Shown here: positions 52,989-57,116 of the stretch, in pieces
Position numbering within the stretch: position 1 is the stretch's first letter
Layout of the letters: each line of letters begins with the position of its first letter
NCBI GenBank assembly: GCA_002104905.1
Contig: MCFE01000531.1
Coordinates: 1 to 61,681 of the forward strand
Reading direction: 5' to 3'
Source of the DNA: Basidiobolus meristosporus CBS 931.73
Lineage: Eukaryota; Fungi; Basidiobolomycota
Length of the DNA stretch: 61,681 nt
The notes under the pieces: model-generated
What the model saw: only the letters and a program-made list of their open reading frames with translations
Database searches by the model: none
Told to the model about the DNA's origin: nothing
Made by a program: the position numbers and the translations under genes

Positions 52989-55227
52989 TCACATCTGAAT
53001 GTATATCAAATGATAATAATATTGCGCGTAAATGGTCAACAAACTACTTACCAGAACCAGCCCAAACCAGGTTAGCTGGTTCCTGTACTCGGGAAAGGCG
53101 TTCCACCATTTGAACAACTTGGCCAGAAACAAAAGACTCAGGACTTGGGTGATGATGGGCAAAATGAAGTAATTCCGGATTCCGCTGGGCAGCCTGGGGT
53201 GAGTGATAACACTCTTCCAAGGTACGGTTCGTGATATGTTGTAGAGCACCCCAAGGAAAATGAGCTGGAGTATTGATATGATCCCTGCGTAATGAGGTAT
53301 GCGCTTGAAGTCGGGATCTTCCGGCGAGAGCTCATCGTCGTCGTCCTGCTGCGCGTGGACCAGCTCCGTGCTCTGGGAGTCTTTCTCTGCACTCTTCTGA
53401 GCGGTTTGTTCCGCCGGTACCTCTTGGACTCCGGAGTTGCGGAGGAATGAATAGGAATAGTAGCCGGCTTCGATGATGAAGCATAGGGCGGATAATATAT
53501 ACACATAGGTTTGGAAACGGACTGTCTCATAGAAGCTCAACCGCTTGAAAGAGATCGGCACATCAAATACCCCAGTATGCATTAAATAACCATTGAGGGT
53601 TTCCTCGAAGTATACGTATCGCTTGCTCTTCAGCTCTGGCGATGGGTTGATAATCTTGAACATGTTTCTTCCGATTTCTCTCAACTGGATGGTGCTGGTG
53701 CCAAAGTAGATGCTTAGGTCCTTCGAAAGGCTTAGCGTTAGGTCATGCTCATGACCTGCTTTGATGGTTGCCTCTAGGAAGACTGAGATCACTTTCTCGT
53801 AGTTCCCTTTAGGCACACGTACAGGCCTGTAAGCGCCTTCGTAGTCCTCGCTTCTACTCTTCCAGGGCTCGGAGTTTATGAAGAACTCGGCGTCGTAATC
53901 GTCCAACGAACTCAGCTCTCCAATCCCGTAGAAATGTGCCAAGAGTCTCTCGATGTATCCCCTACGTATGGCAAGGCTATTGGAATTATGCCACAAGAAG
54001 ATACCCAAGTTTTCTTCCGGAAACAAGGCAATCTGGCTCGTTTGGCCGAACATATCTCCCACATGAGAGATCATACGAACACCATTTTCATATTTTGTTT
54101 CGAAGTATCCATAACAGACTCCATCTAACAATGCGTGAGAAGTACGCTGTTGAGAGAGCATCTTTTCTACATTCTGCTCTTGCAAGGCTCTTTTTCCTTC
54201 CTTGCTAACCCCTCCATTTAGTTGGGACACCATGAATCGGCCCATGTCAGCTGCGGTAGTGAACAAGCCTCCAGTAGGGAGTAGGGCCATATAGAGCTCT
54301 TCTGACGGGCTGAAACTGACACCACCCTCAGCATTTTGCTCATAACCGGTTGCGAAGTGGCTGCCAGATGAGATCAATCGCTCGACAAGCTCGTCCGTTC
54401 GATTGTAGCCGGTGAATGTGCTGGATTTCATCGCCAAGGGGGAGAGTACGTTGTCCTTCATGTATTCCGGAAATGGAGTGCCAGTTAGACGGCTGACCAT
54501 ATACCCCAAAGCCGCCATATTGTAGTAGGAGTAGCTGGATAGAACATCCACATCTCGCACACGTTCCGGGAACTTGGCGAATCGTGATCTAACATCTACA
54601 TCGATCTTTACAGCATGCGCGCGTGAGTATTGGTTTTCCTCAAGTTCATTGGCGGATAGTGCACTTACCTCTTCGGCTCTGCCAAAAGTCCCGGAGAACT
54701 TCTCGTCCAAACCTGAGGTGTGGGTCAGTAGGTGTTCTATGGTCACGTTTGTGAAGAAATCCATGTCCGCAATCCGGAATCCTTTTCTGTCCGTTGGCTC
54801 TCTTAGATAGTTGTTCGCAGTGTCGTTGAGGTTCTCGATGATGCCGGCCTCCAACAATTGGAGAACTGCCGTCGTGGTGAATAGCTCGGAAACGAGGCCG
54901 GCCTGTAGGAGGGTTTTTTCGGGATCAGCCTGAATTCCACTGGACAGGTCAGAGAATCCGTATCCGGCAGAGTAGATAACCTCGTCGCCTTTGACCACGC
55001 TCAAGACGGCACCTGCTTTCCATGTTAGCTATGGGAGTACGACGACACCGAAACTGAAACCCGCCCTAGGCTTTACCTGGTATTTTACCGTCCAAAATCA
55101 CCTTGTGGAAATAGTCATCAGAGAAGGATTTTATTTCTTCCGTCGTGATCTCCCTGAGAGGAGCGACTTTGGTTGCGTGTAAAGCGGCTATGCCGCAAAG
55201 AGATATCAGTATGGGTGGCAGTAACAT
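52989..55227 (-). CDS. Secretory-pathway beta-lactamase/PBP-fold protein with ~4 C-terminal TM helices and no catalytic SxxK (~724 aa)
   Basis: Exon 1 (55227-55077) encodes signal peptide MLLPPILISLCGIAALHA. Intron 55076-55013 restores KIPGAVLSVVKG. Fold motifs LLTHTSG, GGLFTTAADM.RF and HVG are present. SxxK position reads LVSE and YxN reads YSY. Confidence 0.88.
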
Positions 55228-55826: not shown

Positions 55827-57116
55827 ATGAACAGCCTAGCAGAAGCGATCCTCTATGCATTTCTGGCCTTATTTACGCTGCTGACCGTCTTCACCCTCCA
55901 CAGGTTCTGGGCTCAACGGCAGGTGGAGAGCATAAAGTACCGATCCCCGGGGTATTCGATGGTCGCTGCAGTCACCATCTGGTTCTTGGTTAGTGTATTC
56001 TTACTTCGGATGAATGTGGGTTGGCTCCCCTGTTTTGTGTCGCTCTGGGCCACCTCTCTAGGATACCATGTAATCTATCTCGTTACGACGATTCGCTCTA
56101 TTCGGCTGTGGTTCCATTACCGCATCAGCGAAGCGAAGTTCCGCCAAGCTCTGATGCATGCGAACAAGAATGACAAGTGTGCGGAGACCACTGGTGGAAG
56201 CTTCCAATCGATTCGCACGGAGACTCTGGTCTTGAGCGAGGATGGGTTTTATCGCAGACGCCACATATTGTCGAGTCGCTTCTTGACTGGGGTATTCGTC
56301 GTGGTGATACTCGTGCATGTGGCGGTGATGACAATGGTTCAGATCTTCAGTATTAGATATTCCTTCAAGTCGTCTGCCGCTGATGCTGACGGGGTATGCA
56401 TGATCGGATGGGAGTATGTCCCCCATTACGTGATCTCGTTCATGTACACTCTAGTCGTACTTCCGTTCCTCAGTTACCAAATGCGAGACGTGAATGACGC
56501 TTACGGGATCCGTCGGGAGATGTTTTCCATATGCATATTGACGAGCTTCTCCACCATGCTTCTGATTCTGTTTCTGTATCTAGTCAAGCTCCAGCTGCTG
56601 AGTGCAGTGGTGTCAGGTATAGTCTGTTCGGCTTTCCCGCTCGTAGTCATTTACGGCCTTACGGTGATCAGCCCCTTGTTGGATTCCTACAGCATCACCA
56701 TCTTCAGGTGGCCGTGGCTATTCAACTCGAAATCCAACCTGCCGTACACCAGGGAGGCCATGGAAATGTTGCTAAACGATCCGATCCTTTTCAATCAGTT
56801 CAAATTGTTCTCAGTCACCGACTTCACCCTGGAGTGCGTCCTATTCTACGAATGTTGTCACAACTCGCTGGTCACCGGGGATGAAGAGGTGCTCAAAGAG
56901 ATCTACCTGAACTTCGTCCATCCCGACGCCAAGTTCCAGATCAATCTTAGTGAGCAAACCAGGTCCGAACTGGACTCACTTGTGAGACAGAATCGATATG
57001 AACGAACGATGTATCTGAACGCCGAGAGAGACATCCAAGACCTCATGTACGTCAACACCTTCTCCAGATACGTGCAGCACAATCAGGATTCCAAACTGGC
57101 CTGGGAACAGGTATAA
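55827..57116 (+). CDS. 7TM receptor with C-terminal RGS domain (GprK-like class)
   Basis: About seven hydrophobic segments with IKYRSP, PCFVSLW and R.IRLWFHY, then RGS motifs LLNDP..F..F..DFTLECVLFYE..EIY..FV..A.FQINL...R. Intronless. Confidence 0.88.
   Translation: MNSLAEAILYAFLALFTLLTVFTLHRFWAQRQVESIKYRSPGYSMVAAVTIWFLVSVFLLRMNVGWLPCFVSLWATSLGYHVIYLVTTIRSIRLWFHYRISEAKFRQALMHANKNDKCAETTGGSFQSIRTETLVLSEDGFYRRRHILSSRFLTGVFVVVILVHVAVMTMVQIFSIRYSFKSSAADADGVCMIGWEYVPHYVISFMYTLVVLPFLSYQMRDVNDAYGIRREMFSICILTSFSTMLLILFLYLVKLQLLSAVVSGIVCSAFPLVVIYGLTVISPLLDSYSITIFRWPWLFNSKSNLPYTREAMEMLLNDPILFNQFKLFSVTDFTLECVLFYECCHNSLVTGDEEVLKEIYLNFVHPDAKFQINLSEQTRSELDSLVRQNRYERTMYLNAERDIQDLMYVNTFSRYVQHNQDSKLAWEQV

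Follow-up and report, generated by a model that had tools for sequence, protein, structure and literature searches.

Gene model and domain architecture

The DNA analysed here (the window) comprises 61,681 nucleotides from the fungus Basidiobolus meristosporus CBS 931.73 (GenBank assembly GCA_002104905.1, contig MCFE01000531.1, positions 1 to 61,681), whose genus is placed by the NCBI taxonomy within Basidiobolomycota. On the minus strand, positions 52989 to 55227 hold a three-exon gene whose predicted product joins a signal peptide, a penicillin-binding protein (PBP)-fold domain, a beta-rich domain and four C-terminal transmembrane (TM) helices, and in which key catalytic residues of its enzyme family are replaced. 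We refer to this gene and its ortholog in Basidiobolus ranarum as lineage B. As argued below, lineage B is probably a conserved non-catalytic paralog (pseudoenzyme) within an old membrane protein family of early-diverging fungi.

Exon 1 (55077..55227, minus strand, as are all features of the gene; 151 nt) starts with the ATG at 55227, in agreement with the N-terminus of the deposited NCBI model (P0001), and contributes codons 1–50 plus one nucleotide, including a signal peptide at about 55227..55174. It is followed by intron 1 (55013..55076; 64 nt, GTAAAG..CTAAC..CAG), which lies in phase 1 inside the Gly codon of the sequence IPG-AV. The original prediction had proposed this intron, and it appears genuine; its placement directly behind the signal peptide was inexact, as it interrupts codon 51, about 30 residues further downstream. 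Exon 2 (54669..55012) encodes the N-terminal portion of the PBP-fold domain with a degenerate catalytic motif 1, and exon 3 (52989..54605, including the stop codon) encodes the remainder of this domain, the beta-rich domain and the 4-TM module.

Exons 2 and 3 are separated by a second intron (intron 2, 54606..54668; 63 nt, GTAAGT...AAG) of phase 0, which is in frame and stop-free and had been overlooked when the sequence was read as a 671-codon exon that is otherwise open. If it is left unspliced, the open reading frame (ORF) extends uninterrupted to 52989; removal of both introns yields a mature protein of 703 amino acids. Intron 2 is excised in the NCBI model, and the 21 residues which its read-through would add occur neither in this model nor in the B. 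ranarum ortholog nor in any bacterial homolog. Moreover, the intron at the same position of the B. ranarum ortholog is frame-breaking, the paralogs described below carry introns there too, and the read-through residues show the lowest confidence of the structural model (predicted local distance difference test, pLDDT, 53–56). Retention of intron 2 would accordingly produce a 21-residue insertion in a surface loop and not a truncated protein. The deposited NCBI model is itself partial: it comprises 515 residues and stops at '...VFDVP' upstream of TM helix 1, and the last 188 residues with the four conserved TM helices (52989-53555, minus strand) are absent from the annotation.

The protein matches Pfam PF00144 with an E value of 3.7e-36 (125 bits against a cut-off of 27). 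This is its only Pfam domain, and no NCBIfam model attains its cut-off. AlphaFold2 models, computed with a 116-sequence alignment for the ectodomain and for the full-length protein (673-residue read-through version), reached a pLDDT of 92 and 90, respectively. The modelled fold resembles many solved members of MEROPS family S12 with Z scores of 32–36, among them Pab87 (Z 35.9), IS11 esterase (Z 35.6) and ClbP (Z about 33), and the PBP-fold domain additionally matches EstG, an FmtA-like protein and LACTB. Both sequence and fold thus place the protein in PF00144/S12, in line with the class C beta-lactamase/PBP scaffold that had been recognised initially. The structural alignment to IS11 esterase spans model residues 1..492, and thus takes in the second, beta-rich (lipocalin-like) domain (53541..53945, residues about 386-520 of 703; pLDDT >90); the alignment to SurE spans residues 1..491, and full-length ClbP entries align as far as the TM region of the model.

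The signal peptide and the four C-terminal TM helices were both part of the initial description and are seen by hydropathy, the four helices being also confidently modelled by AlphaFold (497-526, 571-595, 617-638 and 640-665 in the numbering of the read-through version). TM helix 1 (53442..53516; hydropathy and AlphaFold) is preceded by a conserved juxtamembrane 'FYE' motif, which reads WYE in bacteria, and is connected to TM helix 2 (53235..53300; hydropathy and AlphaFold) by an acidic linker (53301..53441; 13 D/E, 5 K/R) that is predicted to be cytosolic. TM helix 3 (53112..53180; hydropathy and AlphaFold) and TM helix 4 (52998..53075; AlphaFold) complete the module. All four N-x-S/T sequons are kept in the ortholog, and each falls on the predicted outer side, either in the ectodomain or in the TM2-TM3 loop. 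As these positions and the acidic linker fit such an arrangement, we infer an N-out topology, in which the PBP domain would face the lumen or the cell surface. An acidic 'ELSP(E/Q)D' stretch of the linker is retained in both Basidiobolus species and resembles a CK2-type phosphorylation site or an acidic-cluster sorting signal; where lineage B has its long acidic linker, the TM1-TM2 loop of bacterial homologs is short and Arg-rich.

Catalytic motifs and selective constraint

The catalytic motifs were located by aligning the protein pairwise, with HMMER, to Pab87, IS11 and alkaline D-peptidase, three enzymes of solved structure. In these alignments, LVSE (54896..54885) sits under the SxxK motif that carries the nucleophile Ser and the Lys, placing a Leu (54896..54894) at the position of the Ser and a Glu (54887..54885) at that of the Lys. 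YSY (54525..54533) sits under the YSN of motif 2 (YxN), retaining the Tyr and replacing the Asn by Tyr, and HVG (54057..54065) sits under the HxG of motif 3, the H/K-x-G motif on strand beta3. The substitutions first read from the sequence, Ser to Leu, Lys to Glu and YxN to YSY, are therefore borne out by comparison with solved structures. In the same columns of 109 prokaryotic homologs, Ser and Tyr are found in 100%, Lys in 99%, and Asn and His in 93% each; because these columns are near-invariant, ordinary family variation does not account for the substitutions. A single-base sequencing error behind the loss of the nucleophile is likewise rejected, as the Leu codon (CTC) and the orthologous Ser codon (TCT) differ by at least two base changes.

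Tyr190, His346 and Gly348 are kept, and the changes specific to lineage B (S90L, K93E, N192Y, G194N and L197A) all fall within motifs 1 and 2. Over 72 strongly conserved columns, the B protein shows 16 mismatches to the prokaryotic consensus compared to 14 and 12 in two paralogs with intact motifs, a similar count which suggests that the fold-defining residues have been kept.

For the S12 enzyme Lip3, the S98A and Y193A/F mutants are inactive, whereas K101A keeps 13.7% of the activity via a backup base (PMC12903863). With both nucleophile and base lost, and the Ser being indispensable in Lip3, the B. meristosporus protein, as judged from its sequence, cannot operate by the acyl-enzyme mechanism. 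The same very probably holds for the B. ranarum protein, which has kept the Ser and exchanged the Lys for Glu. One may ask whether the protein could still be an enzyme by means of a non-canonical nucleophile or base, for instance the motif-2 Tyr together with the motif-3 His. The retention of Tyr190, His346 and Gly348 and the residual activity of Lip3 K101A speak for such an activity; however, a Leu replaces the nucleophile in B. meristosporus, the two classes of inactive Lip3 mutants argue for the necessity of Ser and Tyr, the Lys to Glu exchange reverses the charge at the catalytic centre, and the Asn to Tyr, Gly to Asn and Leu to Ala exchanges remodel motif 2. We accordingly regard continued catalysis as quite improbable.

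The B. ranarum ortholog (P0002, K7432_000955; locus L001 on JASJQH010006894.1) is 70% identical over 703 aligned residues and has both introns at identical sites. Its motifs read SISE, YSY and HAG. The check proposed at the outset, whether LxxE and YSY are conserved in orthologs, hence has a mixed outcome: the Glu and YSY are shared, the Leu is not. As the Lys to Glu and Asn to Tyr exchanges are common to both orthologs, they are older than the split of the two species, and the Ser to Leu exchange followed later and in B. meristosporus only. Both species carry the same derived Glu, Tyr, Asn and Ala.

Divergence at nonsynonymous sites between the orthologs (dN) is 0.19 against saturated synonymous sites (pS 0.87; 68% of 4-fold sites differ), and maximum-likelihood estimation gave a dN of 0.19 and a synonymous divergence (dS) of 2.4, that is, an omega (dN/dS) of about 0.08 or less, well below 1, the limit that the original prediction had set for its check. 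Constraint extends over the entire length of the protein: the PBP domain (dN 0.16) and TM2-4 (dN 0.14) are as constrained as the remainder. TM2 is 82% identical to the ortholog, the TM3-TM4 loop KWWNAFPEYRNQ is 100% identical, and the TM module overall is conserved as much as the ectodomain; the TM1-TM2 linker, with 38% identity, is the least conserved part. Within the PBP domain, identity between the B orthologs reaches 91% over five canonical segments of the former active site, which are the best-conserved part, compared to 68% elsewhere in the domain (Fisher p 2e-5), where the segments were taken from the canonical motifs with limits of our own choosing and not from distances in the model.

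These figures also bear on the possibility that the gene is a decaying pseudogene of intact appearance. Beyond the loss of catalytic residues and the partial NCBI model, such a reading could draw on an apparent 1-nt deletion in a Val codon of the B. ranarum assembly (L001:5538-5541), ahead of the last 50 codons, owing to which the NCBI model K7432_000955 ends in unrelated residues. The 50 codons past the frameshift are, however, open in the other frame, 74% identical to B. meristosporus and terminated by the shared stop, and we read the frameshift either as an error of the assembly or as a real but very recent lesion. In B. meristosporus the reading frame is open over all 703 codons, both introns show canonical splice signals, and the low dN against saturated dS holds in every domain. 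Decay is therefore extremely unlikely, as the original prediction had also concluded. Taken together, the existence of active-type paralogs (the intact ones being known from B. ranarum), the catalytic loss and the whole-length purifying selection are, on sequence evidence, what is expected of a maintained pseudoenzyme.

Relatives, shared introns and deep origin

The original prediction regarded the gene as a horizontally acquired and domesticated bacterial enzyme, and a search by word index seems at first sight to agree, as all matches outside Basidiobolus were bacterial or metagenomic, of 25-33% identity and of equal length and TM layout. An exhaustive search gave a different picture. The best non-self match was a B. 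ranarum paralog, A1 (K7432_006522; P0269/P0120), at an E value of 3.5e-114 and 38% identity, whereas the best prokaryotic proteins reached about 1e-46. This search returned 483 representatives at E<1e-30, of which 150 matches were listed and about 30 of these named, fungal members beneath the listed cut-off being outside this view. The named or inspected matches were prokaryotic and from many phyla, except for two fungal genera and two metagenomic contigs. A profile word search with an alignment of the eukaryotic members missed its own members A1 and Quaeritorhiza and is therefore uninformative on further fungal relatives.

A second B. ranarum paralog, A2 (K7432_002755; P0309), is 61% identical to A1. 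Both paralogs carry SISK at motif 1, A2 carries YSN at motif 2, and the TM module is homologous between A and B. Upstream, the A1 (L004:3047-8385) and A2 (L005:3520-8361) loci share a gene for a dCMP deaminase and an unnamed one, which indicates a segmental or whole-genome duplication; the A and B loci are unlinked in B. ranarum.

Outside Basidiobolus, the top matches include a homolog from the chytrid Quaeritorhiza haematococci, whose gene has about ten introns and eukaryotic neighbours, and two metagenomic proteins (P0158 and P0203). Phylogenetic analysis of 52 sequences with IQ-TREE (LG+C20 with posterior mean site frequencies, PMSF) placed the Basidiobolus, chytrid and metagenomic members in one clade of seven with an SH-like approximate likelihood ratio (SH-aLRT) support of 99, and FastTree recovered the same grouping from 157 sequences. 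In an unrooted tree of 35 sequences, from which the long metagenomic branches were left out, Basidiobolus formed a group (100/99) in which B (100/100) is sister to A1+A2 (100/100), and Quaeritorhiza joined at 97/98.

The intron positions point in the same direction. Introns 1 and 2 match in position and phase among B, A1, A2 and Quaeritorhiza, as checked by hand at the boundaries: intron 1 lies in phase 1 in the Gly codon of PG, ahead of A, and intron 2 in phase 0 before an Ile/Val after the post-HTSG loop. The chance of two exact matches is about 1e-5 for ten introns over about 2,500 positions under uniformity, a figure that proto-splice-site bias would raise; such bias does not, in our judgement, explain the shared introns away. 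Because the introns are shared with Quaeritorhiza, they suggest an intron-bearing fungal gene that existed before the lineages split, or else a move from fungus to fungus.

Several observations concern the metagenomic members. The contig of P0158 (L002:10001-12154) has a eukaryotic look: its ORFs are short and sparse, and a cytochrome P450 gene on it is split. This P450 is CYP52/CYP4-like and lies in two ORFs (L002:2176-3830) parted by a short AT-rich gap with a CTAAC-like element. This contig was annotated by a prokaryotic gene caller, and its features suggest a fungal or other eukaryotic origin. Independent motif losses are seen in both proteins, P0158 having ESN for YSN and P0203 (L006:44-1906) having SLSQ for SxxK and I-V-G for HxG; degenerate members make up 4/7 of the eukaryote-containing clade compared to at most 1% of prokaryotic homologs at the Ser, Lys and Tyr positions. 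Upstream of the P0203 start, another frame reads '...TNIPG' (L006:25-70), 34 nt before 'AVVSIV' and with GC...AG bounds. This gap could be a very short intron that occupies the phase-1 site of intron 1; upstream of the '...TNIPG' stretch, 24 nt remain before the end of the contig.

The genomic surroundings are of ordinary composition and eukaryotic in content. The local GC content is 0.47-0.51. A divergent gene (55827-57116, plus strand), 600 bp from the start codon, encodes a multi-TM protein with a C-terminal RGS domain (PF00615, E 2.4e-9); within the window, Pfam scans showed only this RGS gene upstream and a lysine-rich ORF downstream. The neighbours in B. ranarum comprise GH20, 7TM-RGS, RNase_T, CAP, HhH-GPD and eIF3 genes, and the gene order (7TM-RGS head-to-head, RNase_T, CAP, HhH-GPD) is conserved between the two species. 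With the whole neighbourhood conserved, the constant proximity of the RGS gene does not in itself point to a functional module. Bacterial contamination is ruled out by the introns and by the eukaryotic genes nearby, whose synteny is conserved.

These results leave little room for a recent, Basidiobolus-specific transfer in which a bacterial serine hydrolase was acquired and afterwards turned into a non-catalytic sensor. Such a scenario finds backing in the word-index matches and in the published estimate that about 5% of the genes in this strain are candidates for horizontal gene transfer (HGT; PMC7466969). Another publication consulted (PMC11291939) makes no mention of lactamases, and the lactamase of PMC5005798 is a metallo-enzyme and hence irrelevant. 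The much stronger match of the Basidiobolus paralog than of any prokaryotic protein, the monophyly of A1, A2 and B and their grouping with the chytrid protein, the two introns shared with the chytrid gene and the ordinary GC content all speak against it, and no bacterial donor clade was resolved. Recent transfer is thus largely refuted and in our view very unlikely: the nearest relatives are Basidiobolus paralogs with intact SxxK, and the trees and introns largely point to the vertically inherited fungal clade that had been named beforehand as the outcome speaking against a bacterial acquisition. More generally, the case calls for caution with HGT calls in Basidiobolus, as all index matches were bacterial and a fungal clade nevertheless emerged from exhaustive search and introns.

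The deep origin of the family is a separate matter. A single ancient transfer of a complete gene (PBP, beta domain and 4-TM module) from bacterium to fungus at the base of the whole fungal clade, followed by the gain of introns, by vertical inheritance with losses, and by a duplication of which one copy lost catalysis, would be compatible with the pseudoenzyme reading, as it concerns the deep origin only. We consider such a transfer plausible and lean slightly towards it. The named or inspected matches are, bar the few eukaryotes, prokaryotic and from many phyla, the nearest Atlas structure clusters are 89-100% bacterial, and homology of the TM module reaches bacteria. An Atlas feature search with this module gave a best score of 0.89, to unnamed bacterial clusters, and offers no further clue. 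The view that this domain and TM layout is typical of bacteria, expressed at the outset, is hence upheld, many prokaryotic homologs sharing the layout. On the other hand, the tree has no root, its fungal clade forms a long branch outside any bacterial group, names were available for no more than about 30 of the 150 listed matches, and a fungus-to-fungus transfer would look identical.

Proposed function and comparison with known systems

Overall, these results suggest a model in which lineage B arose by stepwise pseudoenzyme birth. A duplication in the Basidiobolus line parted the later dead lineage B from the SxxK-intact A1/A2; the general-base Lys was then exchanged for Glu and the motif-2 Asn for Tyr, with Gly to Asn and Leu to Ala exchanges nearby, before B. 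meristosporus and B. ranarum diverged; and the nucleophile was lost last, by Ser to Leu in B. meristosporus only. The order of events is thus a clean one, with duplication, Lys and Asn loss, and nucleophile loss, and with purifying selection throughout. B would act by binding rather than by acyl-enzyme hydrolysis, at the luminal or cell-surface face. Our best guess for the ligand is the D-amino-acid peptide class, to which the substrates of characterised S12 relatives belong: peptidoglycan stems are processed by R61 and AmpH, N-acyl-D-Asn prodrugs by ClbP, and lipopeptides by Lip3/Lip7 (PMC9889268, PMC12903863). Alternatively or in addition, the TM module may pair with a partner, for example the active paralogs; in ClbP, the TM domain by itself sustains microcin activity after mutation of the catalytic site or replacement of the domain (PMC6776366).

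Several points weigh against this model. The conservation of the motif segments could reflect the structural core instead of a ligand pocket. As two species were compared, the losses are dated by a single ortholog pair, of which the B. ranarum member carries the apparent frameshift described above. The B. ranarum protein retains the Ser and the motif-3 His, and residual activity is possible there by analogy to Lip3 K101A. The A paralogs are those of B. ranarum; a query with A1 retrieved A2 but no B. meristosporus A ortholog, within the limits set on this search by a length window and by annotation. Finally, a search for sequencing runs listed no RNA run for expression, and the splicing is predicted.

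A more specific alternative is that B is a regulatory dead subunit which binds no small ligand and pairs, via its 4-TM module or its ectodomain, with A1/A2 or another membrane protein to modulate activity or trafficking. The conservation of the TM module at the level of the ectodomain, most evident in TM2 and the TM3-TM4 loop, and its homology between A and B are consistent with such a role, as are the deposition of full-length ClbP as a dimer (7ul6) and the non-catalytic second function of the ClbP TM domain (PMC6776366). The high identity of the former active-site segments would, however, be needless if B worked through its TM module alone, the A and B genes of B. ranarum are unlinked, and the interaction is purely predicted. 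We consider this possible but rather unlikely. Less likely still is a receptor for bacterial D-amino-acid molecules (stem peptides, lipopeptides or beta-lactams) that would signal via the 4-TM module and the fungus-specific acidic linker, a eukaryotic counterpart of BlaR1 derived from an ancient fungal S12 family. A 'sensor' role, for beta-lactams, D-Ala-D-Ala or muropeptides as first suggested, is a hypothesis, because an output domain is absent, the Pfam scan having detected PF00144 only. If it is true that the dead ectodomain binds bacterial D-peptides, B would represent a new type of fungal surface receptor for bacteria in a gut-dwelling fungus.

The pseudoenzyme reading can be set against several known systems. 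ClbP (MEROPS S12; PDB 7mde, 7mdc and 7ul6) is alike in having a signal peptide, an extracytoplasmic S12/PBP-fold domain and a C-terminal TM anchor. In contrast to B, ClbP has exactly three C-terminal TM helices and no beta-rich middle domain, retains S95 and K98, and is encoded in a non-ribosomal peptide synthetase–polyketide synthase (NRPS-PKS) island; sequence identity is about 18-20%. B has four TM helices and a 135-residue beta-rich domain and has lost the catalytic Ser and Lys, and no NRPS/PKS cluster with an exporter or other biosynthetic neighbours were found in the B. ranarum neighbourhood or in the Pfam scans of the window.

The best matches by both sequence and structure are the two-domain PBP homologs Pab87 (2qmi), IS11 esterase (7spn), SurE cyclase (6ksu) and Lip3 DL-peptidase (9sn1). 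They share with B the succession of a PBP fold and a beta-rich or lipocalin-like domain, and SurE and R61 have HxG at motif 3 as B does. Unlike B, these proteins are soluble and catalytically competent, with SxxK and YxN, and lack the 4-TM module. Full-length collinearity (PBP, beta-rich domain, juxtamembrane WYE and four TM helices) is found in a prokaryotic family of 'serine hydrolase domain-containing' proteins of 615-730 residues, with members in Agrilutibacter (P0006), Dictyobacter (P0213), Moorena (P0336) and Promethearchaeum (P0128) and an Atlas TM-score of 0.82. This uncharacterised family differs from B in its 25-33% identity, its intact motifs, its short positive TM1-TM2 loop and its intronless genes.

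BlaR1/MecR1 resemble B in concept only, as they combine an extracytoplasmic penicillin-recognising fold with a 4-TM module for signalling and not for turnover. BlaR1 has a C-terminal class-D-like sensor that needs acylation of its Ser and a cytoplasmic zinc-protease domain, whereas B has Leu in place of the Ser, the reversed domain order, and no protease or other output domain detected.

Conserved dead enzyme paralogs are a known phenomenon, and it is not as such that B would be new. For the membrane-anchored fungal family and its dead branch, no characterised example was found in the literature searched. An uncharacterised membrane-anchored PBP/S12-fold family is thereby documented in early-diverging fungi (Basidiobolus and a chytrid), whose shared introns indicate that it is old in fungi.

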